A stretch of DNA of 64,000 bases from IMG/VR virus record IMGVR_UViG_3300024262_006558, positions 248,001 through 312,000 of that record, one strand, 5' to 3'. Under the pieces are notes generated by a model. That model was given only the letters and a program-made list of their open reading frames with translations, was not told where the DNA came from and made no database searches. The position numbers were made by a program, and so were the translations under genes. Numbering within the stretch: position 1 is the first letter of the stretch; each line of letters begins with the position of its first letter. This document shows positions 1 through 53,470 of this stretch, piece by piece.

Positions 1-102
1 GAACAAGCTACGAAAGTCTTGAATGATTACGGAAAACAATTTGAACCTAAGCCATTAACACAACAGGAAAGATGGGATAATTGGGCTATAGGTAAAGGGT
101 AA
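1..102 (+). CDS. 3' end of hypothetical protein (partial)
   Basis: Open frame from base 1 to TAA at 100-102, immediately followed by attC-like element 1. Confidence 0.6.
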   Translation, partial: EQATKVLNDYGKQFEPKPLTQQERWDNWAIGKG

Positions 103-104
103 TT

Positions 105-166
105 GCATATAACGAATTGTATATGAGGCGTGAGGAACGAATGACTGCATATACGCTGTTATATGC
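105..166 (+). repeat. attC-like palindromic recombination site 1
   Basis: GCATATAAC-gaatt-GTATATG...CATATAC-gct-GTTATATGC, directly after a stop codon. Confidence 0.7.
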
Positions 167-196
167 TTTTTTATTAACTAATTAAAACAGATTAAA

Positions 197-520
197 ATGA
201 TTATAGGATTAATACAAGGAAATAGAGTTGAATTAGGAGAAACTGATAACGGATATGTATACAAAAACAGTTTTGCGTTTGACAAAAAGACTGATGAAAT
301 ATGTTATATACCAGAGTTAGGGATTGAGGGAGATATAATTACAGAAGACACTTCTGTTTATAGATATTCCGACTTTTTAGAAATAGCTACTGATTATGTA
401 AAAAGAAATGGGTTAAGTAATACACCTCAAGATATGGCTGAACAATTATTTGAATGTGTTGATTGGCAACATCCAAGTACATTACTTGATGAATGGGAAA
501 TTCATTTAGAAGATGAGTAA
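197..520 (+). CDS. hypothetical protein (cassette 1), VDWQHPSTLLDEW motif
   Basis: ORF track; acidic phage-type small protein between two attC-like sites. Confidence 0.8.
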   Translation: MIIGLIQGNRVELGETDNGYVYKNSFAFDKKTDEICYIPELGIEGDIITEDTSVYRYSDFLEIATDYVKRNGLSNTPQDMAEQLFECVDWQHPSTLLDEWEIHLEDE

Positions 521-522
521 TT

Positions 523-587
523 GCATATAACGGTTAGTATATGAAATGTGGAGCAAAGCGGAATTTTTTATATACCGTGTTATGCTC
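523..587 (+). repeat. attC-like site 2
   Basis: GCATATAAC-ggtta-GTATATGAAA...TTTTATATAC-cgt-GTTATGCTC. Confidence 0.7.
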
Positions 588-604
588 TTTTAAATTAGAT
601 AATT

Positions 605-760
605 ATGATAAGTTTTAAATATTACAAGAATTACGGAATTGAATACTGCTTTGGTAGTGCAACTGTACAGGGATTTATGGGTAGACCTCTTAAAACTTTT
701 ACAGGTGGATGTATAAAGGCAGTAGAAAAAGCAGAAAAGTATATAGATAGCCTTAATTGA
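605..760 (+). CDS. 51-aa hypothetical protein (cassette 2)
   Basis: ATG at 605 to TGA at 760, MISFKYYKNYGIEYCFGSATVQGFMGRP...; below the ORF-track cutoff; fills the space between sites 2 and 3. Confidence 0.7.
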   Translation: MISFKYYKNYGIEYCFGSATVQGFMGRPLKTFTGGCIKAVEKAEKYIDSLN

Positions 761-830
761 GCATAACGGTTAGCGTATAGTGACGTGAAACGAAGTGAAA
801 TGCACTTATACGCCTTGTTGTGGTGAGTAC
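759..830 (+). repeat. attC-like site 3
   Basis: GAGCATAAC-ggtta-GCGTATAGTG...CACTTATACGC-ctt-GTTGTGGTGAGTAC, one extrahelical T. Confidence 0.7.
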
Positions 831-858
831 GGGTTATTAACCAATAAATTAAATTGAA

Positions 859-1080
859 ATGATACAAGACAAATTAGAAAATCAAATCCATAACGTAATT
901 ATGGAAACGGCAAGAGAACCTAAACTTATTGTAATGCACCCACAAACATGGGTTGACCTTGCAAAAGAAGTTACTGGCAAAGATGGGATGACAATAAATA
1001 GATACGACCCAAATATGAAGTACAGAGGGATTAAGGTGATTAGAAGTTTGGATTTGTTGGAGGGTGAGTTTGAAATGTAG
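859..1080 (+). CDS. hypothetical protein (cassette 3)
   Basis: ORF track; between sites 3 and 4. Confidence 0.75.
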   Translation: MIQDKLENQIHNVIMETAREPKLIVMHPQTWVDLAKEVTGKDGMTINRYDPNMKYRGIKVIRSLDLLEGEFEM

Positions 1081-1153
1081 TATTCACCACAACACGAAAA
1101 TAAAGATAAGCGTTAAGCGACCCGATAGGGTTATCTTTTATTTTCTGTTATCG
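1080..1153 (+). repeat. attC-like site 4
   Basis: GTATTCACCACAAC-acg-AAAATAAAGATAA...TTATCTTTTATTTT-ct-GTTATCG, one extra T in the stem. Confidence 0.65.
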
Positions 1154-1205
1154 GTACATAATATCCCCCGTACCGTATATATTGGTGAACTTAAATAAAA
1201 ACATC

Positions 1206-1472
1206 ATGGCAAAGCAAAACTTTAAAAAGAGATATAGAGATTTAGAGGTACAAGTATTCGCAACCCTTAGGGATGCGATTGAGAATAGTGAGTTTAAATC
1301 TGAACACTTAAGCGAAAAAGCTATTAAGGTAAATGTGTTTGATTATACAGAATTATCAATACTTAATGACCGCTTGGTATTATTAGACCATAAAGGTTTC
1401 CATTATTCAATTTATTCTGATTGTACGTTGGAAGATTTAATTGACATCATTAACAAATTGGAAGATGAATAA
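1206..1472 (+). CDS. hypothetical protein
   Basis: ORF track; start moved to the ATG downstream of the repeat. Confidence 0.75.
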   Translation: MAKQNFKKRYRDLEVQVFATLRDAIENSEFKSEHLSEKAIKVNVFDYTELSILNDRLVLLDHKGFHYSIYSDCTLEDLIDIINKLEDE

Positions 1473-2766
1473 ATATTCAAATACCGTAAAAATGTTAGGT
1501 GTAGATACTAGAAGCTCATTTCTTTTTGGGGATGCGTGCGACAATTTAATTAAGTGTAGCAGTAAAGAAATCCAACAAGAAGCAAAGGACGAAATTAGTC
1601 AGATACTAATCAAGCTAAAGCCCGTTGAAGGCGGTATAACTATTCAAATGGTTGACGCGCTTTTACATGGTATGATTACGGAACATGCACACAAAGATAC
1701 TTTGCCTTTAAAAGGGTTTAGTATAAAAGTACATAATTCCCCCGAAGCCGTATATATTGGTGAATCAAAAGAAAAGAATATGCACACTATAAGAAAAAGA
1801 ACGCCAGTATTTGAAACCGATGACTTTCAAGAAGTATTCAATACAGATTCTTACAATGTATTTGTGAAACCTGAATTTGAATCTAAATTCAAAAGCTCTT
1901 TATCTTATCCTGATATCGTACTAAGAAAGTATGACCACGAAAATGGAATGACTACAGTAGTGGCGGACTATCAAAACAAAATAGGAAGCAAGATGCTTGC
2001 AAGAGTAAGAACAGAAACAGTGTACAGAAACATTGAAGAAGCTCCAATAAAGCACACGGCAGTAGATAACATTAACCTGATGATTGTAAATGGTAATCGT
2101 TTAGAATTACCTCAGGATGTAAAGTTCAAAAACTACAATCAGATCAAAACGGTATTGGAGAACTCTGGAGGAAAATACAAGAAATTAGGATTTGAATTTA
2201 AAGGTGAAGCTCAAGAAATATTTGACCGTTTAGTTAATGGGGAAAAGGTTAATGACAAGAAGAAATTCCAATTCTTTGCGACTCCTGATACCTTAGCTAA
2301 AACAGTTGTGGATAAGGCTGACATTAAAGCAGGTGATAAAGTGTTGGAGCCGTCAGCAGGTGAAGCAGGTATAGCAAAACACATTCCTGAATCCGCAAGT
2401 TTAGATGTTGTCGAGTTCATGGAAGAGAATAGAAACTTCCTAATTAAAGAAGGGTACAATGTGATAGGGGAAGACTTCTTAAAAGTGGAGGGAGAGGAAG
2501 TATATGATAAGATTGTAGCTAATCCACCATTTACAAAGAATCAGGATATCAAGCATTTATATAATATGCTTAAGTTGTTAAAGTCAGGGGGGAGAGTTGT
2601 CTGCATTATGTCTACCAGTTGGGTAAAGGGTAGCTTGACTATTCACAAGGAGTTTAGAGATAAGCTAAAAGAATTAAAAGCGCAAGTTTCTGAGATAGAG
2701 CAGGGAGAGTTTAAATATAGTGGAACTAATATTGCCACTATGCTAGTAATAATTGATAAACCATAA
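1465..2766 (+). CDS. N6-adenine DNA methyltransferase domain protein with long N-terminal extension
   Basis: Motif I VLEPSAGEAGIA and motif IV IVANPPF in the C-terminal half. Confidence 0.85.
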   Translation: MNKYSNTVKMLGVDTRSSFLFGDACDNLIKCSSKEIQQEAKDEISQILIKLKPVEGGITIQMVDALLHGMITEHAHKDTLPLKGFSIKVHNSPEAVYIGESKEKNMHTIRKRTPVFETDDFQEVFNTDSYNVFVKPEFESKFKSSLSYPDIVLRKYDHENGMTTVVADYQNKIGSKMLARVRTETVYRNIEEAPIKHTAVDNINLMIVNGNRLELPQDVKFKNYNQIKTVLENSGGKYKKLGFEFKGEAQEIFDRLVNGEKVNDKKKFQFFATPDTLAKTVVDKADIKAGDKVLEPSAGEAGIAKHIPESASLDVVEFMEENRNFLIKEGYNVIGEDFLKVEGEEVYDKIVANPPFTKNQDIKHLYNMLKLLKSGGRVVCIMSTSWVKGSLTIHKEFRDKLKELKAQVSEIEQGEFKYSGTNIATMLVIIDKP

Positions 2767-2800
2767 AAAAAGGTGAGCTACATGGCTCACCTTTTTTGTT
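2766..2800 (+). terminator. intrinsic terminator (near-identical copy at ~10150-10182)
   Basis: AAAAGGTGAGC-tacatg-GCTCACCTTTTTT. Confidence 0.8.
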
Positions 2801-2889
2801 TAGCTGAAAGTACATAGTTTCCCCTTCGTAGTATATATTGGTGAATCGGACAAACAACAAGTTTGCCAGTAAACTAAAACAAATAGATC

Positions 2890-3111
2890 ATGAGCAAGAA
2901 AACATATAAAATCAATTACGGAGGTAAAGAAGAAACCATAACAGGCGTAAATCTTGAAACCGCTCTTTCGGATCATGGATTCAAAGATATTGTTATAGAG
3001 CCATCATGGAGAGGTAAGTCAAATGGAAAGTATATAGCTTTTTGTGGAGGTAGAACTAATCAAGTTCGATGTGAATGGGTTGAGAAGGTGAAAAGATTAG
3101 CAAGTACATAA
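2890..3111 (+). CDS. hypothetical protein
   Basis: ORF track; stop lies inside the next 36-bp repeat. Confidence 0.7.
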   Translation: MSKKTYKINYGGKEETITGVNLETALSDHGFKDIVIEPSWRGKSNGKYIAFCGGRTNQVRCEWVEKVKRLAST

Positions 3112-3170
3112 TATCCCCTCGGTCGTATATATTGGTGAATCTAAACAAAACAAATTAAAATATTAGTATT

Positions 3171-3461
3171 ATGGCAAAGACAGTTTTAAGAGTAGGAGGT
3201 AACGAAATCACGCACGTTTACTTTACAACAATAAATGGACAACATCAATATTTGACCAAAGCGGACAATGAAAGAATGTTAGATATATCTAATGAAGATG
3301 TTGAAATATACTATTCGGGCGAAGACCATGACGAGGTTTTGTCTTTAAAAGAAGATATTTCAAATTTGTTGACTGGTAACATTTCTTTAAAAGTGTTAAA
3401 ATTAAGAATTGCAATGCATAATGGTGTAATTAAAGATAAAGTATTAGAGATTAACGGATAG
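3171..3461 (+). CDS. hypothetical protein
   Basis: ORF track; TAG stop overlaps the first base of the repeat. Confidence 0.7.
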   Translation: MAKTVLRVGGNEITHVYFTTINGQHQYLTKADNERMLDISNEDVEIYYSGEDHDEVLSLKEDISNLLTGNISLKVLKLRIAMHNGVIKDKVLEING

Positions 3462-3512
3462 TACATAATATCCCCCGTCCCGTATATATTGGTGAATCTA
3501 AATAAAGAAACC

Positions 3513-4265
3513 ATGTTTAACATACAAGAACAAAGATATTTCGATGCAGGCATAATGCCTTTTACATTCCACCAAACGGAATCAGAAGAAAGCTACTCTT
3601 ACACCACTAAAGTAGAAGTGGGCAAGGAAGAGACCGTAGAGGTTACAATTACTCATTCTGAATTGAGAAAAGTAGTTGTAAAAGACACGGTAAGAAGAGT
3701 AAAATATTATGCTCCAGGAATGATTGTTAGCATTGTTGAGCTGTTAAAGTGTCCAGCTGGATCTGGATACAATCCATTGAGAAGCGGTAAGACGGAAGTA
3801 CACGTGGATACAGATATCGAAACAAAAAAGATAACAGGAAAAAGCGGTGGTTGGTATGGTCCTCATAAAATGTGCGATACATTTGAGGAAGCAATGGAAT
3901 ACGCTAAAGGATTCGTGAAAGAATTCAGCGAAATGGCGGAAGATGGATTTGTTGAAAAGTCTACTATATTCAAGGGTGATGAAGAAATAAACCGTCAACC
4001 TATAGAAGACGTATTTGGAATTGAAGTTGCGGACAAATGGGAAGCTGCTTGTATAAAAGCTAAGATGTCTAGAAAAGCGGAAGACAAGTATTTGGAAAAG
4101 CTTAGAGCTGTGTTTCATAATCACTTTGGAGAAACGAGACACTTCAAACATTATTGCTTTGAGTTCATGAGCTTCTTAAGAGATATAGACAAAAAGAAGG
4201 ATGACCTAACAGCATTCGAATTAAAACTAATCAGGAAACTATCAAAAGTTACTTGGAGACGGTAA
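3513..4265 (+). CDS. hypothetical protein
   Basis: ORF track; start moved to ATG at 3513. Confidence 0.8.
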   Translation: MFNIQEQRYFDAGIMPFTFHQTESEESYSYTTKVEVGKEETVEVTITHSELRKVVVKDTVRRVKYYAPGMIVSIVELLKCPAGSGYNPLRSGKTEVHVDTDIETKKITGKSGGWYGPHKMCDTFEEAMEYAKGFVKEFSEMAEDGFVEKSTIFKGDEEINRQPIEDVFGIEVADKWEAACIKAKMSRKAEDKYLEKLRAVFHNHFGETRHFKHYCFEFMSFLRDIDKKKDDLTAFELKLIRKLSKVTWRR

Positions 4266-4445
4266 AAATATTATTTTGGTTCAAGGAAAAGGGGACGTGC
4301 TTAGGCGCTGTCCCTTTTCTGATTAGCTGGTTCTCTGAGTTTTTCCGCATATTCGTAAACCTATAGTTTAGATCTTGGATCGGATCCAGAAGTACATAGT
4401 ATCCCCTCGGTCGTATATATTGGTGAACCAAAAAACAAATACATT

Positions 4446-4682
4446 ATGTTACATTTACATTCAGTAATCCTATTCTTGTTTAACAATCACGATTTCGTAA
4501 AAAACGTTTGGGGCGGTACTCATTTAGAAAATCATCTAGGTGGAAAGCTTGAAGGCTTTATCGAAAGACATGGAAACTTAGCGGGACTTGTAAGCTTCTT
4601 AGCGGAACTAGATGCGGAAAACCTTAAGCTAATAGAAGAGTACATCAAAACAAAGCACCCTTCTCATTACTATAAATCTTAA
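4446..4682 (+). CDS. hypothetical protein
   Basis: ORF track, downstream of a repeat. Confidence 0.7.
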   Translation: MLHLHSVILFLFNNHDFVKNVWGGTHLENHLGGKLEGFIERHGNLAGLVSFLAELDAENLKLIEEYIKTKHPSHYYKS

Positions 4683-4746
4683 ATAAAAAGGGGAAGTACA
4701 TAATTTCCCCTTCGTAGTATATATTGGTGAACCAAAAATAAAGAGC

Positions 4747-5112
4747 ATGAAAAAGTCAGAAGAAATCAAGTTAATGATTATCGAAAACTTCATTGACCAC
4801 TTTACTTCCAATGAGGAGGAGAGAGAGAAAATGAAGGCTACAGCCAAAGCTTATGTGGATGAAGACCACGTAAATGAAATTGAACAATCGGAACTGTTCC
4901 AAGAGGAAGAGGATGAAGAAATAAAAGCGGTAAGCAGAGCAGCTAATCTTCTATCTAATGATTACTTGGAGATACCAAGTATCTTAGAGAGGTTAAGCGA
5001 ATTAGAAGACCAGTCCGTAATGCTTGAAGGTTCTGTTGATGATATTATTGTATGGGAAAAGGTTGCGCATTCATTTACCGTTTCACAATTCTTAGAAGAA
5101 ATAGGGTACTAA
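4747..5112 (+). CDS. hypothetical acidic protein
   Basis: ORF track. Confidence 0.75.
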   Translation: MKKSEEIKLMIIENFIDHFTSNEEEREKMKATAKAYVDEDHVNEIEQSELFQEEEDEEIKAVSRAANLLSNDYLEIPSILERLSELEDQSVMLEGSVDDIIVWEKVAHSFTVSQFLEEIGY

Positions 5113-5180
5113 CTAAAAATGAGGGGGAAGTACATAATTTCCCCCTCATAGTATATATTGGTGAATCAAATAATTAACTC

Positions 5181-5636
5181 ATGGAAAGCACAATTCAAAT
5201 AAATAACAGATACGCTACAGGAACTTCTTATGCTTGCATAGATGAAGGAGAAAAGACTTTAGCTTTCACAAGCCTTGAAGATGCTGTTCAGTATTTCACC
5301 GATACATTAAAAGGTTTCTATTCAGAAAGAACGGGTGAATTTTCAAGATGGAACTATTGTTCTAAAAATGATCTTGATTGGCATGTACATACTCAAACCC
5401 TTGACTATGCAACTAACCTAGAAACGGTTAAAGCTTATTTAGATGAAAATGATGTTTATGAATGCAGCGGAGGTCTACCTCCAATGTATGAAATTAAAAT
5501 TAGTAAAGATTTCAAAGTAACAGTTAAAACGTTTATACACATGACTCTTCAAAGTCAAACGCTTACTTGGTTTTCGGAAGATGCTATTAAAGCGGCTATC
5601 ATTAAGAAAAGAAACCATATAGTAGAAAGTACATAA
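5181..5636 (+). CDS. hypothetical protein
   Basis: ORF track; stop inside the next repeat. Confidence 0.75.
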   Translation: MESTIQINNRYATGTSYACIDEGEKTLAFTSLEDAVQYFTDTLKGFYSERTGEFSRWNYCSKNDLDWHVHTQTLDYATNLETVKAYLDENDVYECSGGLPPMYEIKISKDFKVTVKTFIHMTLQSQTLTWFSEDAIKAAIIKKRNHIVEST

Positions 5637-5681
5637 TTTCCCCCTCATAGTATATATTGTTGAATTAAAAAAGAAGAGATT

Positions 5682-5885
5682 ATGAAAGTAGACATGTATG
5701 GTACGGAAGTAGAAATATTCTTTAATGAGTATGATTCTAAAACAAAGAAAAGAAAAGTTATTGACATGGAATTTACCTCTGCTCATAGAAGAGAGTTGGA
5801 TAACCAAATGGATAGTACAGACAGCGGCTGTTTCTTTAATGTAACAGTCGGAACTAAAACAATCACAGGACACTTTAGCTTTTAA
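5682..5885 (+). CDS. hypothetical protein
   Basis: ORF track. Confidence 0.7.
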   Translation: MKVDMYGTEVEIFFNEYDSKTKKRKVIDMEFTSAHRRELDNQMDSTDSGCFFNVTVGTKTITGHFSF

Positions 5886-5889
5886 AGAT

Positions 5890-6030
5890 ATGCCAAAAGA
5901 AAATCAAATCATACTATGCCCCGAATGTTTTAAGGGGCAAGTACAACCCGACTCTAAAGGAGAGGGGAAATGCAATCAATGTTCAACCGAGTTTGTGTAC
6001 AAAGCACCAACTACAGTAAAATTTAAGTAG
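5890..6030 (+). CDS. 46-aa zinc-ribbon peptide
   Basis: MPKENQIILCPECFKGQVQPDSKGEGKCNQCSTEF...; two CxxC motifs. Confidence 0.6.
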   Translation: MPKENQIILCPECFKGQVQPDSKGEGKCNQCSTEFVYKAPTTVKFK

Positions 6031-6096
6031 CACTCATAAGTAAAAGTACATAATATCCCCGACATCGTATATATTGGCAAACAAAACAAAAACAAT

Positions 6097-6483
6097 ATGA
6101 AAGATGTTAAATTCCTAGGAGTCGAGCTTAATTTCTTCGGCGACCTAACCAATTCAAAAATGGACTTCGGTTCACTAACTCTAACCAATGAAGGTAGAGA
6201 GTACAAATTAGATGTATGCCAAACCTATAGAACATTCGAAGGCGGTTTCACTAGCGTTAGGATAGACTTAGAAGAAGATAGAGAAACGTTAAATGATTGT
6301 AAGTATGACCTTACAGCGGTTGATCTAATGTCTTCTAGTATAGATGCAAACCTTTTCTTTGAATCAGAAGATACACCAGAGGATGGAACGTTCTTTGTAA
6401 AATTCATTAACAAGGATGGATCTGGATGCACAAAAGCAATCGATCTTAGTAATGAAACAGTAGATTGGAATGCTAACCACTAA
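6097..6483 (+). CDS. hypothetical protein
   Basis: ORF track. Confidence 0.75.
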   Translation: MKDVKFLGVELNFFGDLTNSKMDFGSLTLTNEGREYKLDVCQTYRTFEGGFTSVRIDLEEDRETLNDCKYDLTAVDLMSSSIDANLFFESEDTPEDGTFFVKFINKDGSGCTKAIDLSNETVDWNANH

Positions 6484-6634
6484 AACAAAGGGGAAGAAAT
6501 TCCCCTTTTTGTTTCTCTGAGTTTTTCCGCAACTTCGTATACCTACATATTTCTATGTATCCATATGTGAAAAGCTGAAAAGTACATAATGTCCCCACCG
6601 CCGTATATATTGGTGAATCAAAAAAAACATCATT

Positions 6635-6880
6635 ATGGAAAAGGCTTGTATATCAATTATCGTAAAAAAGAATTTTAAAAAGACGCAAGGTGGGAGTATT
6701 GACGTACAATACGATACGCAAATGGGTGAACTTAAAATTGTTGAAATTGGAGATGCAATTGCAAGTTTGAATAAGTCTGCTACCGTTACTATAGAGTATT
6801 CAGTATTCAGTGAAATTTCAGGAACTTGGTTAGTACTTAGAAGTTACTATGCAAATGAAAAAAGATTAGTTAAACACTAA
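6635..6880 (+). CDS. hypothetical protein
   Basis: ORF track. Confidence 0.7.
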   Translation: MEKACISIIVKKNFKKTQGGSIDVQYDTQMGELKIVEIGDAIASLNKSATVTIEYSVFSEISGTWLVLRSYYANEKRLVKH

Positions 6881-6937
6881 AAGTACATAATATCCCCACC
6901 ACCGTATATATTGATGAATCAAAAAACAAACATTATT

Positions 6938-7663
6938 ATGGAAAAGTTAAAATTTGGAAAAGGAAATGCGAAATTAGGTAAAAAGGTTATGACTTTCTCT
7001 TTGCCAGCAGGTTATTCTTGCCCTTTCGCAAAAGACTGTTTATCAAAAGCAGACAAAGATACTGGAACGTTAACCGATGGTAAACATACACAGTTTAGAT
7101 GTTTCAGCGCTTCTAGCGAATCTATTTATAAAAATACTCGCATAGCACGTTGGCACAATTACGATGCCTTAAAAGGGCTTAAAACGGAGCAAATGGCGGA
7201 GTTGATTAATGCTTCTATTCCAAAAAATACGGGCATGGTAAGAATACACGTTTCAGGAGACTTCTTTAATCAAGCTTACTTCGATGCTTGGATGTTAGTT
7301 GCAAATATTAATCCTGCAGTAGTATTCTATGCATACACTAAGAGCATTGGATATTGGGTAGAAAGATTAGGTTCAATTCCTGCTAACTTAAAATTAACTG
7401 CTTCATTCGGAGGTAAAAATGACAAGTTAATTGAAAAACATAACTTGAAATCTGCAAGAGTAGTATATTCTTATGCGGAGGCGGAAGAATTAGGCTTAGA
7501 AATTGACCATGACGATAGTCACGCATTCAAAACCGATTATAGTTTCGCGTTAATTATCCACGGTGGACAACCAAAAGGGTCTGCAGCTTCAAAAGCAAAG
7601 CAAGCTTTGAAAAAAGAAGGTTGGGAAGGTTACACTAAGAAAAACAAAAAGGCTGCAGCTTAG
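6938..7663 (+). CDS. GP88-like phage protein (radical-SAM-like fold)
   Basis: GNAKL, FSLPAGYSCPFAKDC...C, RIHVSGDF and FYAYTKS motifs typical of the gene-product-88 family. Confidence 0.75.
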   Translation: MEKLKFGKGNAKLGKKVMTFSLPAGYSCPFAKDCLSKADKDTGTLTDGKHTQFRCFSASSESIYKNTRIARWHNYDALKGLKTEQMAELINASIPKNTGMVRIHVSGDFFNQAYFDAWMLVANINPAVVFYAYTKSIGYWVERLGSIPANLKLTASFGGKNDKLIEKHNLKSARVVYSYAEAEELGLEIDHDDSHAFKTDYSFALIIHGGQPKGSAASKAKQALKKEGWEGYTKKNKKAAA

Positions 7664-7677
7664 TAGTCTTTATATAA

Positions 7678-7708
7678 AAAAAGGACCGATAAACTTCGGT
7701 CCTTTTTT
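7678..7708 (+). terminator. intrinsic terminator
   Basis: AAAAGGACCGA...TCGGTCCTTTTTT. Confidence 0.8.
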
Positions 7709-7740
7709 GTATCTCTCCCTATTAGTGCCTATATTTGTGT

Positions 7741-7926
7741 ATGGATTCAATAATAAAGAAAGATAAGCAAAACCCTCAAAGTGGTTTTACTTTGCAATTT
7801 GGTGGTAAGAATCAAAACAGCTCAATTCAAATAGAAAGATTATCAGATCCAAAAATAACAGTTTGTTATAATGGATCAAAAAAAACTCTCTCCCTTGAGG
7901 AGTTAGCAAAGTTATTAGATCTCTAA
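7741..7926 (+). CDS. hypothetical protein
   Basis: ORF track; ATG just after the TATATTTG element. Confidence 0.6.
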   Translation: MDSIIKKDKQNPQSGFTLQFGGKNQNSSIQIERLSDPKITVCYNGSKKTLSLEELAKLLDL

Positions 7927-8253
7927 TAATTTCCGCAACTTCGTAAACCTTATACTTAAGCTCTCCCTATGTGGAGGGCTTTTTTTGTTTAGCTGAAAAG
8001 TAAACTTTCCTATAAGTACATAATATCCCCACCACCGTATATATTGGTGAATTAAAACTAAAATCTTTATGAATAGATTAAAATTAATAAACCAGTTAAT
8101 GTCAAGAAAAAATGGAAGAAGAAATATTTCACTCATACGATACTGAATACATAAAAGAATGTATCGAAAACGAAAGCTGAAAAATAAAGTTTTCCTATAA
8201 GTACATAATATCCCCATCACCGTATATATTAGTGAACGAAAACAAAACACATC

Positions 8254-10148: not shown

Positions 10149-10244
10149 GAAAAGGTGAGCTGTATGGCTCACCTTTTTTGTTTAACTGAAAAGTACATAA
10201 TATCCCCCGCCTCGTATATATTGGTGAACTTAAATAAAAACATC

Positions 10245-34637: not shown

Positions 34638-36044
34638 TTACCATTTGTCTTTAGTAAAGTACTTTTTTAATGAGTCATATATGTATATAGACGCTTCTCC
34701 TGTAGATCCTGTTTCATAAGATCCTCTATAACTATAATCTATCAAACTACTAGACACAGTTTGAACCATTTTTGTAATTGGCGTTGGAATTAGTGGTATA
34801 TCCATTCCATATTTATTAAGAGCTTTAATGAAGAAATTTCGAGCTATTACTGATGCTACCAAATATTTTGTAGAGTGGCTTAGTTCCGCGCATTTATCTA
34901 AAGCTTTTTCAATAGTAATGTGTGATCTCTTACTAGGATTAGCTCCGTGTTTCATCAGAACTTTAAAAGAATCTTGACAATCTTGCATAATAGAACAAAT
35001 AATAGCTGTCACTTTTTTCTTGTTAAGAAAATTCATATTTGCTCCAAAGTTTGCTAAGATTTCCAATTTTTCTACATCACCTTTCATTACACATTCATGC
35101 ACTAATCTGTTACCATTACTAACAAAAGAGTTTGGGTTAGCTCCGTTTTTCATGAACAACACTAGCACTCTCTTATCGCTATGATCGATAGCTTCTTCTA
35201 TAAACCTATTAGCATTTGACCCTTTCTTCAATAAAGACTCCATCTTTTTAAGAACTTTAACTCTAGTGTTTTTCTCTTCTTTATCATTTAACAAAGTGAT
35301 TGAGTTTATTATATTGGATGGATCAGTTTTCAACAAATAAGATAGAATTATGTCAGGGTCAATCCCCATTTCTATTAATAAATCAAATTTACTCTCTTTA
35401 TTTTCAAAAGTTTCTTGAAGGTAATCTCTTATATATAGATCTGTGTTGGAAAAACATTTAGATAATAAAATCATCTTCTCATCAAAATCATCTCTTTTAA
35501 AGAGATGATCATGTTTCCAATAATAAAAAATAAATGAAGATTTTAAACTTTCACTTGTTATTTGAGAGATTAATGCTTTAAAAACATTAATTTCCTGACA
35601 GAATATTTCATATAAAATATCATTGTCAGTAACCAGTTGTAATGATATAAAAGAAAACGTTCCAAGTTTACTTAATGCTTTCTCCACATAATTAAATTTT
35701 CTTTTAACTAATAAGAAAATTAAAAATTTAGACCCAAAACTTTTAAGTTTACTGTCGTCAACTACTATACTTTCAACTTTTTGTATAATCTTATTTAGTA
35801 TGTAGTTAAATACTATATCTAATTTTTTGTCATCTTTATTATCTATACAGTGAAGAAGTACTTCAAGAGCTTCATCTAATGTAAGATTTGTAGGTTCAGC
35901 TGAAAATTCAAAGAAGTATTTAAATAAGAAAGGTTTAGGAAGTTTAAATCTTTCTTTTTCGCTCATAGACTCAATATCAATGAATTCCATGTATTCATTG
36001 GCTATTTCTTCGCTGTATGGTAGTTTAAGGTTTATAGTAGCCAT
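34638..36044 (-). CDS. ankyrin-repeat protein with LPYSEE-type head
   Basis: GNRLVHECVMKGDVEKLEILANFGANMN. Confidence 0.8.
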   Translation of the reverse strand: MATINLKLPYSEEIANEYMEFIDIESMSEKERFKLPKPFLFKYFFEFSAEPTNLTLDEALEVLLHCIDNKDDKKLDIVFNYILNKIIQKVESIVVDDSKLKSFGSKFLIFLLVKRKFNYVEKALSKLGTFSFISLQLVTDNDILYEIFCQEINVFKALISQITSESLKSSFIFYYWKHDHLFKRDDFDEKMILLSKCFSNTDLYIRDYLQETFENKESKFDLLIEMGIDPDIILSYLLKTDPSNIINSITLLNDKEEKNTRVKVLKKMESLLKKGSNANRFIEEAIDHSDKRVLVLFMKNGANPNSFVSNGNRLVHECVMKGDVEKLEILANFGANMNFLNKKKVTAIICSIMQDCQDSFKVLMKHGANPSKRSHITIEKALDKCAELSHSTKYLVASVIARNFFIKALNKYGMDIPLIPTPITKMVQTVSSSLIDYSYRGSYETGSTGEASIYIYDSLKKYFTKDKW

Positions 36045-37831: not shown

Positions 37832-38481
37832 TTATTATAGTCTTGATCTTTAGATTCTGAAGCTCCAGCTCCAGGAACAGCCCCTAAGTTAAGCAAATAT
37901 TCTTTTACTATTGTGTAAGGGTTAGCGTTATCATAAAGATAGTTTAATTCATTGTTATATAGATAATCTAATGGAGTCCAACCTTTATGACATTTATCAT
38001 TAATATTAGCACCAGCTTCAATAAGATAGCGATGTATATTATCTTCTATATGAGATTGCTCCAAAGAAATCATCAATGGAGATTTACCTGTTGATATACC
38101 TTTTGAGTTTGGATCCGCTCCGCATTGTATAAGCATGTCTAAGGAGTTTTTGAGACCGTGGTATGCGGCAGCACATAATGAAGGAGTTATTGTATTAAGA
38201 GGCTTCTTTCTTAGCCAATACCTAACATAATTAATATCCATTATAGTGCTTAGAGTATTTATCAAATGGATTTTTTCATTATGTATAGCCCATGAAAATA
38301 ATACACCTAAATTTAGTTCATTTTTAAAGTCATTTAAAAACTCAGCATCAAAACCAGATATCTCTTCAAAATATTCATACCATTCTTCTATTTGATCCGC
38401 ATTTTGCACAAACCATTCCTGTCCTGAAGATCTTCTACGAATCTTTCTGGATTCATAATTAAAATATCCACTAGCTTCCAT
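37813..38481 (-). CDS. ankyrin-repeat protein with Trp head
   Basis: QEWFVQNADQIEEW; GKSPLMISLEQ...LIEAGANIN. Confidence 0.85.
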   Translation of the reverse strand: MEASGYFNYESRKIRRRSSGQEWFVQNADQIEEWYEYFEEISGFDAEFLNDFKNELNLGVLFSWAIHNEKIHLINTLSTIMDINYVRYWLRKKPLNTITPSLCAAAYHGLKNSLDMLIQCGADPNSKGISTGKSPLMISLEQSHIEDNIHRYLIEAGANINDKCHKGWTPLDYLYNNELNYLYDNANPYTIVKEYLLNLGAVPGAGASESKDQDYNKWEWVG

Positions 38482-39613
38482 ATTCTTGTAGTAGTTCTGT
38501 GAGCTCGTAATTACGTTTACTTCTAGCATATTCTACTAACTTTAAACCATTAATAGTTCCTTTATTAGGATCAACTCCTAGCTTTAACATATCTTCAACA
38601 ACTTTTAGGTTGTTGTCGCAAATTGCTCTTTGTAGAATTTCACTATTTGAATATGACCCGTTTTTAGATAACATTTTAATTGCTTCTATTGGACCATTTG
38701 TTATTGCATGCTTAGCTAAAGAAATACCTTCATTGTTTTTTTTAGTTAAATCGGCACCTTTATCAATAGCAAATTTGAATAGGTCTAGATTTTTATTGTA
38801 AAGACCTATCCATATAAGTGATTTTTTATCTCTTAATACAGCATCAATTTTCCAAAAACCATTATCAATAATGTATCCTAACAGTTTCATCATATTTTTC
38901 TTTTGATTGTCTGGTACTGGCTTTATCATATTATTAGCGCACCATAAAACAGTTCTTTCAACAACTTTCTTCTCCATACATGAATTAATAAATTCTTCAT
39001 CTATAGAGTTTTTAAGATCATACATATACACCATAGATTTAATTAAAGGAACTGAAGGCGCGGCTTTATATCCTTTTTCTTTTATGAAGAATTTGATCAA
39101 CTCTACAGTTTTTATATATGAAAATCTATCACTATTTGAAATAACAATCGTCATTTGTAAGTTGGTAAGGTTTAAGCGTTTTAATAAACTTATCGCTATA
39201 TTAGATGAAACAACCGACATTACAAACGCTAAAGTAAACTTATCTATTTTTCTGCCTTCTAAAAATTTAACACATGATATTATATCCTCTTGCTTTAAAG
39301 CGTGTTTAAAAGCGTCTCTAACACCACCTACTTCAATTGAGCTATTTTTAAGACTAGCATCCTTAGTCTTTATGTCTAGAATGTTAAATATCATTCTAGC
39401 CGAATTGCCTCTATTATCATTTATGAGAGTAATATATAGCTGGCTAAGCATTTTAAATGTCAATCCAGTCTGATCCGTAATCAGACTGGATAGTAGATCA
39501 TCGGGAAGGGCAGAAATATCTTCACAACTCATTAAAGGAAGCTCAAGGAACTCAAAGAATTCCTTGGCTAACTCATTAGAGTATGGCACTTTTAACGTTA
39601 GGTAATTGGACAT
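38471..39613 (-). CDS. ankyrin-repeat protein with VPYSNE-type head
   Basis: FAIDKGADLTKKNNEGISLAKHAI; MLKLGVDPN. Confidence 0.8.
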   Translation of the reverse strand: MSNYLTLKVPYSNELAKEFFEFLELPLMSCEDISALPDDLLSSLITDQTGLTFKMLSQLYITLINDNRGNSARMIFNILDIKTKDASLKNSSIEVGGVRDAFKHALKQEDIISCVKFLEGRKIDKFTLAFVMSVVSSNIAISLLKRLNLTNLQMTIVISNSDRFSYIKTVELIKFFIKEKGYKAAPSVPLIKSMVYMYDLKNSIDEEFINSCMEKKVVERTVLWCANNMIKPVPDNQKKNMMKLLGYIIDNGFWKIDAVLRDKKSLIWIGLYNKNLDLFKFAIDKGADLTKKNNEGISLAKHAITNGPIEAIKMLSKNGSYSNSEILQRAICDNNLKVVEDMLKLGVDPNKGTINGLKLVEYARSKRNYELTELLQEYGS

Positions 39614-50657: not shown

Positions 50658-52466
50658 TTAAAATGGTAAATCTTCTTCATCATCACCTCGATCTACCATG
50701 TCAGTGAAAAAAGGTTCTACATGCTCTTTTGGTTCATAGGCCTCAAAAGCATACAAAACTTGTTGAACTGGCCTGTGTAAACCTAAAGATTTCTCTTCTT
50801 TTTTGTATATGGAAATTGGAGCAGAATCTAATATTTTATTTATATCACTAACAACTTCTATGGGAGGGTTTATATTTGAATAACCTCTAAACTGTTTATA
50901 TTTAAAGAAGTTATTACCTTCACTATTTAACCCAACTCCCACTTCTAAAGTCCACCCTTTTTTATGAATTTCAACTTCTTCTTTACATAATTTTTCTAGG
51001 AGTATATCATCTTTCAATTTTATATGAAATATAGCACTTTGACCTGAATTAATAACATTAGAATATGATGTTACACAATGCTTCATTTTAGTCCCTTCTA
51101 ACACTAAACGATCTACATCATCTACCAATTCTATGTCGTACTTATCTGTAGATTGAATAACTCGGTACCAAGATTTAGATTTAATTTCACCTAATTCTTT
51201 CTTTTTATAAACAATAGAAACATTATCATGTTCTTGCTTTAACCTCTTTGGTGACTTGATCTTTAAATTAATCTTCATGCCTAATTCATAAGACATCCTT
51301 ACATAGTCTTTAACTAAATAATCTTGGTCTTCTAATCCTGGTATTAAATGATTATATAATTTTCTAAAAAAGATCATGTTATATGATGTATTTGTAAAAA
51401 TCAAATCATTACAAGCTGCTCTTTTTATTGCAGGAACATCAAGCGGTTGATTCTTATCAACTATAGGACTTCCTCCAATTGTAAGTCTATTTTTTCTCTG
51501 TTCATCATTTTTATATAGTATATGATTGGATAATAATCCGTATGATTTAATCTCTTCTAAGCTCATAATAGAAGTAAGAGAATCTACAAAGCTTTTTATC
51601 TTGTTTTCTTGATTATGTATGAACTGAGTTACTTTATTCAATTCATCTGGCTCTACAATATAAGCAATAATTAAAGCTAGGTCTGTGTTACACATTCCTA
51701 ATAGCTTCTTAGGAATGTTAACCTCATTTCCATTAACTTTTTTTAGTAGTTCAGCCATAGTTTTTGTGTTTTTAATTAATTTATTGGGTATTGGCTTATT
51801 GTATAAGCTTTTCATTAAAACGCTTGCAACTGGGCCTCCACTATAAATGTCGAGCAACTCTCCAAATAAATCACCTTTATTAGTTAATCCAGTTTTACTA
51901 CAAATTGTTTCATGATTCTTGAGAGATAGATATTGAGTTCTATAAGTACATCTCTGCTTATAGTTTTTCATTTTAAACCTAACTAAAGTAGAATCATTTT
52001 TCATATTAAATACAACTCTACCTTGCCACACTTTATCTAAAAAGTAATGCTCCGTTTTATTGTTATATCCAGTATAATGATACCACTCTTGGTATTGAAA
52101 CTTTTCCTCTCTTAAATCATATCTCAAGATCTTTTCCTCAAAAAAAGATCTTGAGATACTTGATTCACCATCAAACTTATTTTTGTTTAATATAGCTTTT
52201 TCTGAATTAAACCAATTATTTTCCCAATGTTCAAGTATCCAATACTCCCATCGATCTGTTTTTATATACTTGATTTTTTCAACATAACTATTTTCAGTTC
52301 TAAAGTCTTCATAATCACTTATACCAGTAGTGAACTTGTTAGATAAACAAGTTCTATTAAATATATCTAAAACAAGCCTTTTCTTACCAGTTTCTTTAGA
52401 AAATATTTTTCTGATATCATTGACATCAGATATTTCGATCTTATCTTCAGTATGTTCTTGAATCAT
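50658..52466 (-). CDS. PcfJ-like domain protein
   Basis: C-terminal LKQEHD...LVLEGTKMKHCVTSY...AIFHI...TLEV. Confidence 0.8.
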   Translation of the reverse strand: MIQEHTEDKIEISDVNDIRKIFSKETGKKRLVLDIFNRTCLSNKFTTGISDYEDFRTENSYVEKIKYIKTDRWEYWILEHWENNWFNSEKAILNKNKFDGESSISRSFFEEKILRYDLREEKFQYQEWYHYTGYNNKTEHYFLDKVWQGRVVFNMKNDSTLVRFKMKNYKQRCTYRTQYLSLKNHETICSKTGLTNKGDLFGELLDIYSGGPVASVLMKSLYNKPIPNKLIKNTKTMAELLKKVNGNEVNIPKKLLGMCNTDLALIIAYIVEPDELNKVTQFIHNQENKIKSFVDSLTSIMSLEEIKSYGLLSNHILYKNDEQRKNRLTIGGSPIVDKNQPLDVPAIKRAACNDLIFTNTSYNMIFFRKLYNHLIPGLEDQDYLVKDYVRMSYELGMKINLKIKSPKRLKQEHDNVSIVYKKKELGEIKSKSWYRVIQSTDKYDIELVDDVDRLVLEGTKMKHCVTSYSNVINSGQSAIFHIKLKDDILLEKLCKEEVEIHKKGWTLEVGVGLNSEGNNFFKYKQFRGYSNINPPIEVVSDINKILDSAPISIYKKEEKSLGLHRPVQQVLYAFEAYEPKEHVEPFFTDMVDRGDDEEDLPF

Positions 52467-53470
52467 GTTAAAATATCTATGATAAGCTTTATAAGTCCAG
52501 TTAGAATGCCTATACAGGCCCACAGTTTGTATAATCGTTTAATATAGTCTACTTTTTCGTCCTTTATGGTATCATCAAATTTAAAAATTAAACCCCCCAT
52601 AAAAGTATACAATAAAGCTCCTACAACTTTAACTGCAAAGAAAGTAATTAATAAATCATTAAATTTGGTACCATATATAAAATAGACCATTGAACTTACA
52701 ACGGATGGAATTGCAATACAATAACATAAAAACATTATTCCTGTAACTTTCCAGAATCTTTTTACATTTATATTATTATTGTTTTCTAATATTTCATAAT
52801 TTTCGGCAATTATTCTTTCATTTTCTTCCTCTATTTCCCTGCACTCTCTTGCTTGTGTTACTAGTTCTTCAGCTATTCTAGCCTCAAATTCTTGCATTAT
52901 TTCATACGTAGGAACATCCAATAAGCCTGAGAAGTCACCTTCAATCATTTTAGTTAATGTAATATTTCCTCCGTTCTTAGCATTTTTATAAACTATATTC
53001 ATCATGGAGCTAACATACTTATTGCCATAAATGGTTTTAATAATAACTAAAGCTTTAAACACTACCGAGCTGAACTCTTTTTTTGTGGAATTAAAACTTA
53101 TAAAATGTTCAATATCTTCAAGTATTAAACGATTTTTATTCCCTTTTTCTCTAAAGCATCTCAATGACTCCATCATTAAAGTGATCCCGCCTTTATCATA
53201 AGGATGGTTCATAAAATAATCACTTAAATAAGAAATTATTTTTTTATTTGCAATCCTTTCTTCATAAACTACTTGTTTCACTAATTCCAATGGAGCATTA
53301 AATAATATCCTAATGTCAAATTGTTCCCAATCTATAATGTCAAAATAGTCTTCTATAACATTATCTGTAATAGGTAAATTTACTTTAATGAATTCAGGTT
53401 CAGATTTTGGATTTTTATAATATACTTTTCTCGAATACATGTCTTGTGTTATTGATATTACATCCATCAT
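52463..53470 (-). CDS. Trp head + C-terminal membrane segments
   Basis: NLPITDNVIEDYFDIIDW; 3 hydrophobic helices at the C-terminus. Confidence 0.7.
   Translation of the reverse strand: MMDVISITQDMYSRKVYYKNPKSEPEFIKVNLPITDNVIEDYFDIIDWEQFDIRILFNAPLELVKQVVYEERIANKKIISYLSDYFMNHPYDKGGITLMMESLRCFREKGNKNRLILEDIEHFISFNSTKKEFSSVVFKALVIIKTIYGNKYVSSMMNIVYKNAKNGGNITLTKMIEGDFSGLLDVPTYEIMQEFEARIAEELVTQARECREIEEENERIIAENYEILENNNNINVKRFWKVTGIMFLCYCIAIPSVVSSMVYFIYGTKFNDLLITFFAVKVVGALLYTFMGGLIFKFDDTIKDEKVDYIKRLYKLWACIGILTGLIKLIIDILT

Follow-up and report, generated by a model that had tools for sequence, protein, structure and literature searches.

Whether four hairpin-forming repeats at the left edge of a Bacteroidota phage sequence mark a system of mobile gene cassettes, and if so how that system relates to integrons, was the question raised by this locus. 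The window analysed is a 64,000-nt stretch (positions 248,001 to 312,000 of IMG/VR record IMGVR_UViG_3300024262_006558) of a 494-kb jumbo phage contig, and the earlier note had described within its first 1,153 nt an integron-like attC array with a visible recombination footprint. All four imperfect palindromes were found where the note had placed them, each beginning at or next to a stop codon (TAA 100-102, TAA 518-520, TGA 758-760, and TAG 1078-1080). What the note had seen in the sequence was confirmed. Sites 1 to 3 (102-169, 520-590, and 756-828) proved to be homologous direct repeats forming one covarying hairpin family, while site 4 (1080-1153) belongs to a second, terminator-like type. 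The features of the region, with cassette boundaries inferred from junctions in other phages (see below), are as follows:

1..113 (+), the 3′ end of cassette unit 0, with the last 33 codons of an 82-aa ORF that starts left of the window, stop TAA 100-102, and the R″ box ATTGCATATAAC at 102-113; the crossover point is after AAC 111-113, and the upstream site and R′ partner GTTATATGC lie at 9558-9630 of L001 (sequence of the source phage).
114..531 (+), cassette unit 1, with hairpin body 114-157 (spacer GAATT, L″ GTATATG, L′ CATATAC, spacer GCT), R′ 158-169, a 5′ leader, ORF 197-520 (107 aa), and R″ 520-531.
532..767 (+), cassette unit 2, with hairpin body 532-578, R′ 579-590, ORF 605-760 (51 aa, stop TGA inside R″), and R″ 756-767.
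768..1093 (+), cassette unit 3, with hairpin body 768-816 (bulged T in the 3′ arm), R′ 817-830, ORF 859-1080 (73 aa), and R″ GTATTCACCACAAC at 1080-1093.
1094..1153 (+), type B resident site (site 4), a hairpin with a T-run that looks like an intrinsic terminator, conserved from AAC to GTTAT and serving as the landing site at the right end of the array, in the position of attI.
1156..1192 (+), promoter-like motif of the next resident gene (1206-1472), marking the end of the promoterless array.

The sites were next examined by covariance modeling. A generic scan for AAC-hairpin-GTT structures gave equal counts on both strands and was too noisy, and was replaced by a covariance model built from related sites and by an nhmmer profile. 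Sites 1, 2, and 3 fit the model at E = 1.7e-9, 8.9e-12, and 7.1e-9, respectively, and nothing else in the 64-kb window matched. AAC and GTT were invariant in the 16 seed sites and in the roughly 100 model hits, with the remaining positions following GTTR rather than GTTRRRY. The inner stem was found to covary, with 7 of 11 pairs changed on both sides and 90.8% of cells paired compared with 76% in shuffles (0 of 500 shuffles reached this value). The spacers are 5 and 3 nt, with a conserved G.T at L-stem position 7 and, in some sites including 3 and 4, a bulged T in the predicted folds; no clear equivalent of the canonical extrahelical G and T was found, so whether unpaired bases mark the recombining strand as in attC is left undecided by these observations. 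Site 4 folds with z = −4.1, was flagged by a terminator scan at 1119-1132 (its function was not assayed), and is followed by the promoter motif, the core of which occurs 26 times on the + strand of the window against 0.18 expected, with the first copy at 1173 and none inside 1-1153. The type B element ends every array in the contig, where it is followed by resident sequence, and also occurs in two other contigs, eight contexts in all, with a compensatory change in the inner stem. Site 4 is not a cassette's own site but the resident, terminator-like landing site.

The pairing of the outer arms across each gene, rather than within each site, was also confirmed. Over 15 nt, complementarity was (i) 11/15 for 158-172 versus 517-531, with the first 9 contiguous; (ii) 13/15 for 579-593 versus 753-767; and (iii) 13/15 for 817-831 versus 1079-1093, where one mismatch is a G.T. 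The same pairs were recovered in an inverted repeat search, the last as a 15-nt repeat at 93%. Own-site pairing of sites 2 to 4 stops after GTTAT/ATAAC or GTT/AAC. The boxes are 12 to 15 nt long (R″ = ATT R N5 AAC, R′ = GTT N5 Y AGT), not 9 nt. Absence of this complementarity from further sites had been named in advance as grounds to reject the cassette reading; instead, the rule was found to hold in about 80 other phage loci. At least 5 of 6 variable bases matched in 34 of 56 adjacent site pairs, compared with 3.4% of random pairs and 4.8% of own-site pairs, and the exact reverse complement of GTT+6 was present downstream within 3 kb for 63 of 106 sites but upstream for only 2 of 105, with a direct copy for 2 of 106.

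To determine how widely the system is distributed, the flanks and related sequences were searched. Inspection of the upstream flank, which the earlier note had asked for, revealed that the array continues left of base 1 by one more cassette, as the note had expected, with further arrays 3.3 kb upstream; the contig, of which about 120 kb was examined, carries at least six such arrays. It also encodes a tail sheath gene. While blastn of window 1-8000 against cultured phages found nothing useful, short queries made of single sites identified Polaribacter phage P12002L and Cellulophaga phage phi13:2, and homologous sites were also found in about 70 uncultivated viral contigs and in Bacteroidota MAGs. 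A scan of L001 3000-11500 against Rfam 15 returned only chance-level matches (E > 2). Of 54 cassette ORFs surveyed, 17 are DNA methyltransferases of five families, whereas the cassette proteins of the window had no match in PHROGs or, in the cargo census, in Pfam. Homologues of the 107-aa cassette protein were traced to see this cassette in other contexts; in two contigs (L040 and L042) they sit in tightly packed operons without sites, which gave no evidence of mobility of this particular cassette. A second assembly of the same phage (L002), 99.94% identical to the source, showed no cassette difference.

Gain, loss, and reordering of cassettes among related genomes had been put forward beforehand as a test, and the outcome was positive. 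Near-identical genomes were found to differ by whole units, and cassette order changes. About 13 junctions fall directly after the AAC at the 5′ end of a site, not at G^TT in the right-hand box as the earlier note had proposed. Two contigs, L029 and L030, are 100% identical except for a 949-nt unit (hairpin + R′ + methylase gene + R″) inserted exactly after ...CCTAAC, and the sequences to the right of the junction share no homology. This indel excludes a G^TT crossover because the hairpin body travels with the downstream gene. Similarly, the near-identical stretch shared by contigs L017 and L020 starts after AAC; a unit of L016 has other neighbours in L021, with all junctions at AAC; and the L012/L018 and L027/L028 pairs show the same. 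Four Cellulophaga phages whose platform is 87 to 98% identical (97 to 98% among three of them) carry four different last cassettes, each joined at AAC| to that platform, while one cassette sits at another position in a relative and the order of two cassettes is swapped. The mobile unit is therefore hairpin + 5′ leader + gene + ...AAC, that is, site plus downstream gene and not gene plus downstream site. The footprint in the window alone is symmetrical and could not tell the two readings apart.

The strand and polarity of the sites were then compared with those of integrons. The gene-sense strand was more stable in 51 of 55 sites (p = 2e-9), and G.T pairs numbered 78 on the sense strand against 21 on the other. 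The sense strand reads AAC-G-NTTRG, like the published bottom strands of the aadA7 and PH101 attC sites. In phage TJE1, which has canonical polarity and served as a control, the bottom strand is antisense to the genes, whereas in P12002L the published bottom strand of attC1 is the sense strand. Thus, the folded strand that corresponds to the integron bottom strand is the gene-sense strand, and polarity is inverted.

A recombinase was sought but none was identified. No integrase was found among 42 window ORFs of at least 180 aa, in agreement with the earlier note, and no adjacent intI, attI, or Pc was present in the window, in the 10 kb upstream, at three other arrays of the contig, or in P12002L; the rest of the contig was not read. 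Among about 100 ORFs next to arrays in about 25 loci, the only recombinase found was one resolvase, although two of these surveys covered only the first 25 of 46 and of 37 families, such that a single-member hit could be missed. Lytic P12002L has no annotated integrase, and ten of its larger unannotated ORFs have no recombinase domain. In phi13:2, gp038 is a 428-aa integrase of the SAM_5 type that is not IntI-like, belongs to the ordinary Bacteroidota integrase family, and sits in an xis-int module; its position next to the array may be coincidental. When we examined whether this tyrosine recombinase marks arrays elsewhere, its relatives were ordinary prophage integrases with few or no sites upstream, a result that decides neither for nor against a link. 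Recombination by an integron integrase was not assayed here; in the published assay, P12002L_attC1, the one site of this architecture that has been examined, gave no verified attI1 × attC product with IntI1 (PMC9892861).

The explanation we favor, with moderate confidence, is that window 1-1153 is the right-hand part of a four-cassette array of promoterless mobile gene cassettes, situated between a resident phage gene that has its own promoter and that gene's terminator-like hairpin (type B), and presumably read through from that promoter. In this view, each cassette consists of an attC-like hairpin body, a 12- to 15-nt R′ box (GTT N5 Y AGT..), a short leader, one small ORF, and an R″ box (..ATT R N5 AAC) that overlaps the stop codon; as R′ and R″ of the same cassette are complementary, a free circular cassette would carry one fully paired hairpin site. 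Cassettes would be excised and inserted by site-specific recombination, with the crossover at or within the AAC at the 5′ arm of the hairpin on the gene-sense strand, which is the geometry of the integron attC bottom strand but with the genes in the opposite orientation. New cassettes would land between a resident ...AAC and the resident hairpin or platform. Our analyses show the sites, their covariation and cross-gene complementarity, the gain, loss, and reordering of cassettes with junctions at AAC|, the bias toward folding of the sense strand, the wide spread among Bacteroidota phages, and the methyltransferase-rich cargo. By contrast, a circular intermediate (no circle has been observed), a single-stranded folded substrate, and catalysis by a tyrosine recombinase that is not IntI, supplied by the host, by a co-resident element, or in temperate Cellulophaga phages perhaps by the adjacent xis-int module, are deduced. 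Several points stand against this model: (i) identical hairpin bodies carry different boxes on both sides, which a single crossover point does not explain; (ii) one cassette in the source phage (L001 4141-4719) has non-matching boxes; and (iii) the sense-strand bias would also fit an RNA role. The interpretation given in the earlier note is thus partly supported: a cassette array with a recombination footprint, in a phage linked to Bacteroidota and with a site family distinct from canonical attC, was upheld, while the position of the crossover, the composition of the cassette, the identity of the folded strand, and the role of site 4 were not.

Of the alternatives, structure-directed rearrangement without a recombinase survives best, although we consider it unlikely. 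Here, in single-stranded DNA at the replication fork, the R′/R″ stem and neighbouring hairpin would bring two ...TAAC ends together, and polymerase slippage, template switching between co-infecting genomes, or phage single-strand-annealing proteins and NinG would delete or transfer units at the 3- to 4-nt microhomology. Consistent with this, all junctions share (T)AAC, no recombinase was found near the arrays whereas Rad52, ERF, Sak, and RecT annealing proteins and NinG are common in these phages, the geometry predicts deletion of exactly the unit observed, and lytic P12002L carries arrays. However, slippage gives deletions only and not the reordering and new neighbours seen; nor does it explain why every gene acquired its own pair of complementary boxes, the invariant AAC/GTT, the fixed 5/3 spacers, or the conserved G.T positions, and about 13 junctions at one phosphodiester-scale position is unusually precise for microhomology. 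Less likely still, the hairpins may chiefly be RNA elements between cistrons (terminators, processing sites, or stabilisers), with the 5′ and 3′ ends of each cistron pairing and shuffling arising from ordinary homologous recombination in conserved linkers, as proposed for the promoter-early stem-loops (PeSL) of T4-type phages. The sense strand does fold better and is rich in G.U-compatible pairs, every site follows a stop codon and is co-oriented with the genes, type B looks like an intrinsic terminator, and hairpin bodies are conserved between otherwise unrelated phages. Nonetheless, the sequences to the right of AAC at the junctions are non-homologous, so homologous recombination in linkers cannot have made them, breakpoints are not spread through the conserved bodies, and no Rfam family matches in L001 3000-11500; an RNA role may coexist with the DNA rearrangements but does not account for them.

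An ordinary bacterial integron fragment picked up by the phage, with canonical attC sites served by a host IntI, is very unlikely. HattCI predicted a site of this type in P12002L, the region was published as a CALIN (PMC9892861), and AAC/GTT cores, L and R boxes, and cross-cassette complementarity are all present. Counter to this reading, polarity is inverted relative to the genes, the crossover is on the other box, IntI1 failed on P12002L_attC1, complete integrons are very rare in Bacteroidetes (PMC9024848), the family recurs in many phage lineages and in several arrays per genome (found in part with a variable-gap pattern scan), and our model does not detect the canonical attC sites of TJE1. 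The weakest reading is that each gene is a small transposon with terminal inverted repeats (GTT...AGTAC / GTATT...AAC), moved by a transposase; each gene is indeed flanked by 12- to 15-nt inverted repeats with conserved outer and inner triplets. This MITE-type or terminal-inverted-repeat reading was rejected because the unit boundaries do not coincide with the inverted repeats, as the mobile unit includes the upstream hairpin and is not bounded by the two repeats. In addition, the central 5 to 6 nt differ in every cassette yet stay complementary, which recognition by a transposase does not require, there are no target duplications, and no transposase was found among the ORFs surveyed in the window and next to arrays.

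A further possibility, which we hold only tentatively, is that Bacteroidota viruses share their own cassette-exchange system, either an ancient relative of the integron or a convergent invention, that uses sense-strand hairpins, places the site upstream of the gene, and inserts cassettes in front of terminators or of the xis-int module by means of a recombinase that is not IntI and has yet to be identified (a host enzyme, a helper element, or a new protein). Such a system would form a common pool of anti-restriction methylases and small, probably anti-defence, genes moving between unrelated phage lineages, from 40-kb siphoviruses to a 494-kb jumbo phage. Integrons are regarded as bacterial devices, and the few attC clusters seen in phages have been read as borrowed pieces. 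This case differs in that the site family is coherent and phage-wide, with several arrays per genome, demonstrable cassette turnover between near-identical phages, reversed polarity, and no IntI. If an enzyme is found, it would show how virulent and temperate phages of a major phylum trade accessory genes one at a time, give a handle on the origin of attC sites and cassettes, an old open question, and supply a ready list of small phage genes under rapid exchange, which are likely counter-defence factors, as the cargo census already suggests. The system could also serve as a single-gene insertion tool for Bacteroidota phages.

Of known systems, the closest are integron gene cassettes and attC sites, including the clusters of attC sites lacking an integrase (CALINs) reported in phages (Qi et al. 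2023, PMC9892861). Shared with these are imperfect palindromes with AAC...GTT cores, inner L boxes that resemble the R boxes, unpaired spacers of unequal length, structure conserved more than sequence, complementarity of the R boxes across each cassette, co-oriented promoterless one-gene cassettes, crossover at the AAC of the 5′ arm of the folding strand, and methyltransferase cargo. One member, P12002L_attC1, was already predicted by HattCI, but not by HattCI + INFERNAL; the IntegronFinder attC covariance model was not applied in the present study. The differences are that the folding strand is the gene-sense strand, such that the site lies upstream of its gene within the cassette; R boxes are 12 to 15 nt with conserved ATT/AGT ends and a fixed G.T; spacers are 5 and 3 nt; there is no IntI, attI, or Pc promoter; the landing site is a terminator-like hairpin or the start of an xis-int module; one genome carries several arrays; and IntI1 did not recombine the tested member. 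The published account lists only two sites in P12002L and does not describe the arrays, the footprint, or the inverted polarity.

More distant parallels were also considered. In the integration of CTX-phi and other elements that exploit Xer recombinases, a folded single-stranded hairpin is recombined by host tyrosine recombinases with no recombinase encoded by the element (Val et al. 2005), which is a precedent for arrays in lytic phages that lack an integrase; involvement of Xer was not examined here, and that case is a single integration of a whole phage genome at dif, without arrays of one-gene cassettes or AAC/GTT boxes. In the PeSL modules of hyperplastic regions of T4-type phages (Arbiol et al. 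2010), small accessory ORFs of large phages are likewise separated by repeated stem-loops and shuffled between relatives, but the shuffling is ascribed to homologous recombination between repeated promoter + stem-loop units, with no cross-gene complementarity and no fixed crossover nucleotide, whereas here the cassettes lack the promoter motif and the junctions join non-homologous sequence at one fixed position. Finally, in hairpin-guided single-strand transposition (IS200/IS605 TnpA, and REP elements with RAYT), sub-terminal hairpins are recognised in single-stranded DNA with strand specificity and a short conserved cleavage motif next to the hairpin; those systems need an HUH tyrosine transposase, no gene for which is seen here, and have left and right ends of fixed sequence, while the boxes here vary per cassette and stay complementary.

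The four hairpin sites were found at the positions assigned to them in the earlier note, and its observation of palindromic sites linked by complementarity across the intervening genes was confirmed. Sites 1 to 3 are copies of one element, here termed type A, which reads: stop codon, ATT R N5 AAC, a 5-nt spacer beginning with G, an inner stem (L''), a loop, the returning stem (L'), a 3-nt spacer and then GTT N5 Y. A covariance model was built from 16 such sites in several phages and found the three copies in the window and nothing else in the 64 kb. Site 4, termed type B, has the same AAC...GTT frame around a different hairpin, which is T-rich and looks like a terminator. The sites are as follows:

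102-169: site 1, type A (E-value 1.7e-9)
520-590: site 2, type A (E-value 8.9e-12)
756-828: site 3, type A (E-value 7.1e-9)
1080-1153: site 4, type B

The inner stem was found to covary, with seven of 11 pairs changing on both sides and 0 of 500 shuffles reaching the observed pairing. The cross-gene complementarity is real: positions 158-172 pair with 517-531, 579-593 with 753-767, and 817-831 with 1079-1093, while pairing within a site stops after 3 to 5 bases.

The genomic context of the array was examined next. The 107-aa cassette protein is encoded on JGI contig Ga0210003_1000004 (494,080 bp), in which window base 1 corresponds to about position 248,001 and which also encodes a phage tail sheath. 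The upstream flank, which had been named as a place to look for further sites, was found to hold one more cassette (82 aa), starting at a type A site at 9558-9630 of L001 (a stretch of the source phage); this site follows a 171-aa gene with its own promoter-like motif. Two further arrays lie at L001 3400-5130 and 5196-6190, each ending in a near-identical type B element, and a scan for type B found three more arrays in the same contig, at about 86-89 kb, 120-122 kb and 397 kb, on either strand and always co-oriented with the genes, as well as type B in two other contigs. In eight contexts type B is conserved exactly from AAC to GTTAT, with a compensatory change in its inner stem, while the sequence differs on both sides. 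A duplicated module (98.5% identical) at L001 5058-5203 and 6128-6260 consists of type B, a promoter motif embedded in a perfect 10-bp palindrome, and a short tail. The first copy is followed by a half-site whose R' box matches the next R'' box at 9 of 9 positions (5196-5225), and the second by an 'empty' R'-loop-R'' hairpin (6252-6280); a similar empty hairpin was detected at about 1455-1495 of L003 and in L020, two further stretches.

A palindromic promoter-like motif, CCGTATATATTGGTGAA, usually preceded by GTACATAnTnTCCCC, was found in 26 copies on the + strand of the window (1173-25552) against 0.18 expected. It precedes almost every other gene of the region, standing before nearly every + strand gene, but is absent from the cassette array. 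One of 32 window ORFs scanned is a sigma-70/ECF-type protein, which might read this motif. The array is therefore a run of promoterless genes between a promoter-bearing gene and a terminator-like hairpin. Just after the array (1441-2766) lies a gene for a 441-aa protein with a C-terminal DNA methyltransferase domain, which matches PHROG methyltransferase families at 1e-48 and Eco57I-type weakly, and which has a promoter-like motif inside its N-terminal half at 1748-1764. A near-identical strong intrinsic terminator (13-bp stem, GGTGAGC...GCTCACC, with A and T runs on either side) is repeated after two unrelated genes, at 2766-2797 and about 10150-10182. In addition, a repeated element of about 35 nt (TTGTTTCTCTGAnTTTTTCCGCAnCTGCGTAAACC) lies downstream of several terminators and upstream of the promoter motif (L001 about 25-60, 765-800, 6485-6520 and 7625-7665; window about 6500). 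The - strand of the window from about 26,000 to 64,000 is a block of accessory-looking genes, including eight ankyrin-repeat proteins (e.g., 34638-36044 and 38471-39613), four DUF6745 paralogues, a PcfJ-like protein (50658-52523), NDK and CinA, with GC content falling to 28-31% in parts.

To determine how general the system is, two hairpin bodies from the source phage were used as queries and found as exact 26-27-mers in 29 stretches of IMG/VR contigs ranging from 4 to 388 kb, while a slightly degenerate pattern found 73 stretches, with most of these contigs 30-42 kb long. Between most of these contigs the only nucleotide similarity is the roughly 47 nt from AAC to GTT. Cultured relatives also carry the sites, including Polaribacter phage P12002L, which has an array of at least six sites around its methylase genes, and Cellulophaga phage phi13:2. 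The body was likewise found in MAGs of Flavobacteriaceae, Saprospiraceae, Bacteroidales, Lentimicrobiaceae and Prolixibacteraceae, one being a prophage-like region in a 3.1-Mb contig. Some sites have long loops that contain the annotated start of an ORF or a whole small ORF (phi13:2 gp028 and gp031, P12002L_0057; stretches L050, 9301-9440 and 10285-10430, and L031, 1875-2085), and many are half-sites with only R'' and L'', which suggests either insertion into hairpin loops or misannotated start codons.

Absence of the cross-cassette complementarity from further sites had been set out in advance as grounds for rejecting the cassette reading; instead, the rule was found to hold throughout. At least 5 of 6 variable bases match in 34 of 56 adjacent pairs, compared with 3.4% for random pairs and 4.8% for a site's own two ends. 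In a larger set, the exact reverse complement of GTT+6 lies downstream within 3 kb for 63 of 106 sites (median distance 365 nt) and upstream for 2 of 105. The paired boxes are 12-15 nt long and carry a fixed asymmetry in which R' ends in AGT where R'' has ATT, giving a G.T on the sense strand. One cassette of the source phage, at L001 4141-4719, breaks the rule, as its R' is GTTATATGC but its R'' is GGTGCTAAC; its 5' leader is nearly identical to that of the 82-aa cassette at L001 9610-9660, which suggests a later exchange inside the cassette.

As the footprint in one genome is symmetrical, related genomes were compared to locate the crossover, a comparison that the earlier note had itself proposed with G^TT as the expected breakpoint. 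Stretches L029 and L030, which come from different samples, are 100% identical except for 949 nt in L029. The extra piece starts directly after ...GTGCCTAAC, ends with ...ACCTATAAC, and holds a hairpin body, R', a DNA methylase gene and R''; to the right of the left junction the two sequences share no similarity. A G^TT crossover would have left the other hairpin body in L030, so that reading is excluded for this event. The same position was found to recur in other pairs of stretches, including: (i) L017/L020, where the near-identical stretch (99.8% over 3.1 kb) begins after AAC; (ii) L016/L021, where a unit has different neighbors on both sides and a 100% identical block ends at AAC, giving four junctions; (iii) L012/L018; and (iv) the right end of a 100% identical block shared by a 176-kb and an 11-kb contig. 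The clearest case is the phi13:2 group of Cellulophaga phages (with phi18:3, phi19:3 and phi46:3 named by their integrase records), in which the roughly 5 kb between a conserved promoter region and a conserved platform is a mosaic. Four phages carry four different last cassettes, each joined directly after AAC to the same platform; one cassette sits at another position in a relative, with both junctions at AAC, and the order of two cassettes is swapped. The platform starts, at about 5711-5730 of L051-L054, with AAT followed by the perfect 10-nt palindrome GTTATATAAC, which is an R' and an R'' fused with no loop and looks like a simple double-stranded core site.

Overall, about 13 junctions were counted directly after AAC and none at G^TT among blocks of 94% identity or more. 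One older pair, L014/L024 at 92% identity, has the same R' and gene behind two different bodies, such that exchange on the GTT side may occur occasionally. The mobile unit is thus hairpin body, R', leader, ORF and R''...AAC, with type B staying behind as the resident site. In the window these units are:

114-531: mobile unit
532-767: mobile unit
768-1093: mobile unit

The strand preference of the sites was also investigated. With DNA energy parameters, the sense strand was found to fold better in 51 of 55 sites (Wilcoxon P = 2e-9), forming 78 G.T pairs compared with 21 on the other strand. In integrons it is established that the bottom strand folds and is cut in the AAC of its 5' arm, as reported by Bouvier 2005 and MacDonald 2006; here, the AAC crossover lies in the 5' arm of the sense strand. 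The published bottom strands of attC aadA7 and of the PH101 sites read ...AAC G CTTG..., like the sense strand here (AAC G NTTAG). In Tetrasphaera phage TJE1, whose attC sites IntI1 recombines, the bottom strand is antisense to the genes, while in P12002L the strand that Qi et al. list as the bottom strand of attC1 is the gene-sense strand. The two lines of evidence, crossover side and folding bias, agree that this is an attC-like site used in the opposite orientation relative to its gene. In this mirrored frame the landing site is at the downstream end of the array, which is where type B lies in the jumbo phage and where the platform lies in the Cellulophaga phages.

A recombinase was sought near the arrays, and no recombinase domain was detected among 42 window ORFs of at least 180 aa or next to three other arrays of the contig. 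About 100 ORFs of at least 170 aa in about 25 array loci gave one resolvase and no Phage_integrase in a check that covered only part of the families, so a single-member hit could be missed. The lytic phage P12002L has no annotated integrase, and ten of its larger ORFs carry no recombinase domain, although it does encode a Rad52-like annealing protein and NinG. In phi13:2 the platform is a small Xis-like gene followed by a 428-aa tyrosine recombinase on the same strand, which is where intI would lie in the mirrored layout. However, this protein belongs to the common Bacteroidota SAM_5 + Phage_integrase family of prophage integrases, and its relatives have few or no sites upstream; the association is a lead and not a result. 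Complete integrons are very rare in Bacteroidetes (PMC9024848), and IntI1 gave no verified product with P12002L_attC1 (PMC9892861). The enzyme that makes the crossover was thus not identified, which is the main gap in this account. While the arrays are confirmed and shown to be general, a non-IntI tyrosine recombinase acting in trans on a folded single strand is our inference, held with moderate confidence, for which Xer-dependent integration of CTX-phi is the precedent.

Other explanations were considered. Slippage or template switching across the three-way structure would delete exactly the observed unit at the TAAC microhomology and would also fit the lack of an enzyme; however, it cannot reorder cassettes and does not explain why every gene has its own complementary boxes. 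An RNA role fits the sense-strand bias and the look of type B and may coexist with recombination, but it cannot produce junctions between nonhomologous DNA. A canonical CALIN served by IntI is contradicted by the polarity, the crossover side and the IntI1 assay. A transposon with terminal inverted repeats is contradicted by the unit boundaries.

To examine the cargo, 54 distinct ORFs delimited by an R' and its exact R'' partner were collected. Of these, 17 are DNA methyltransferases (nine N6_N4, four MT-A70, two D12, one Dam and one C5), which make up nearly all of the ORFs longer than 180 aa, while the remaining ORFs are small and have no family match. The cassette proteins of the window's own array (82, 107, 51 and 73 aa) have no matches. 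Homologues of the 107-aa protein occur without sites in packed operons of other contigs; the gene therefore exists both as an ordinary gene and as a cassette.

The only related report found is that of Qi et al. 2023 (PMC9892861), which lists a CALIN with two predicted sites in P12002L: one is of this type and was inactive with IntI1, and the other is a reverse-oriented sequence next to the end of the array and was active. The extended arrays, the footprint, the AAC crossover, the inverted polarity and the spread among phages are not described in that report, and further literature searches found nothing, although most subscription journals fell outside their reach and a prior description elsewhere cannot be excluded. 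The integron-like interpretation in the earlier note is partly supported, being right in kind but wrong in polarity and in its G^TT crossover point. The system is not a member of the canonical integron family, as three defining features of that family were tested and were not found here, but it most likely works like an integron in mirror image.
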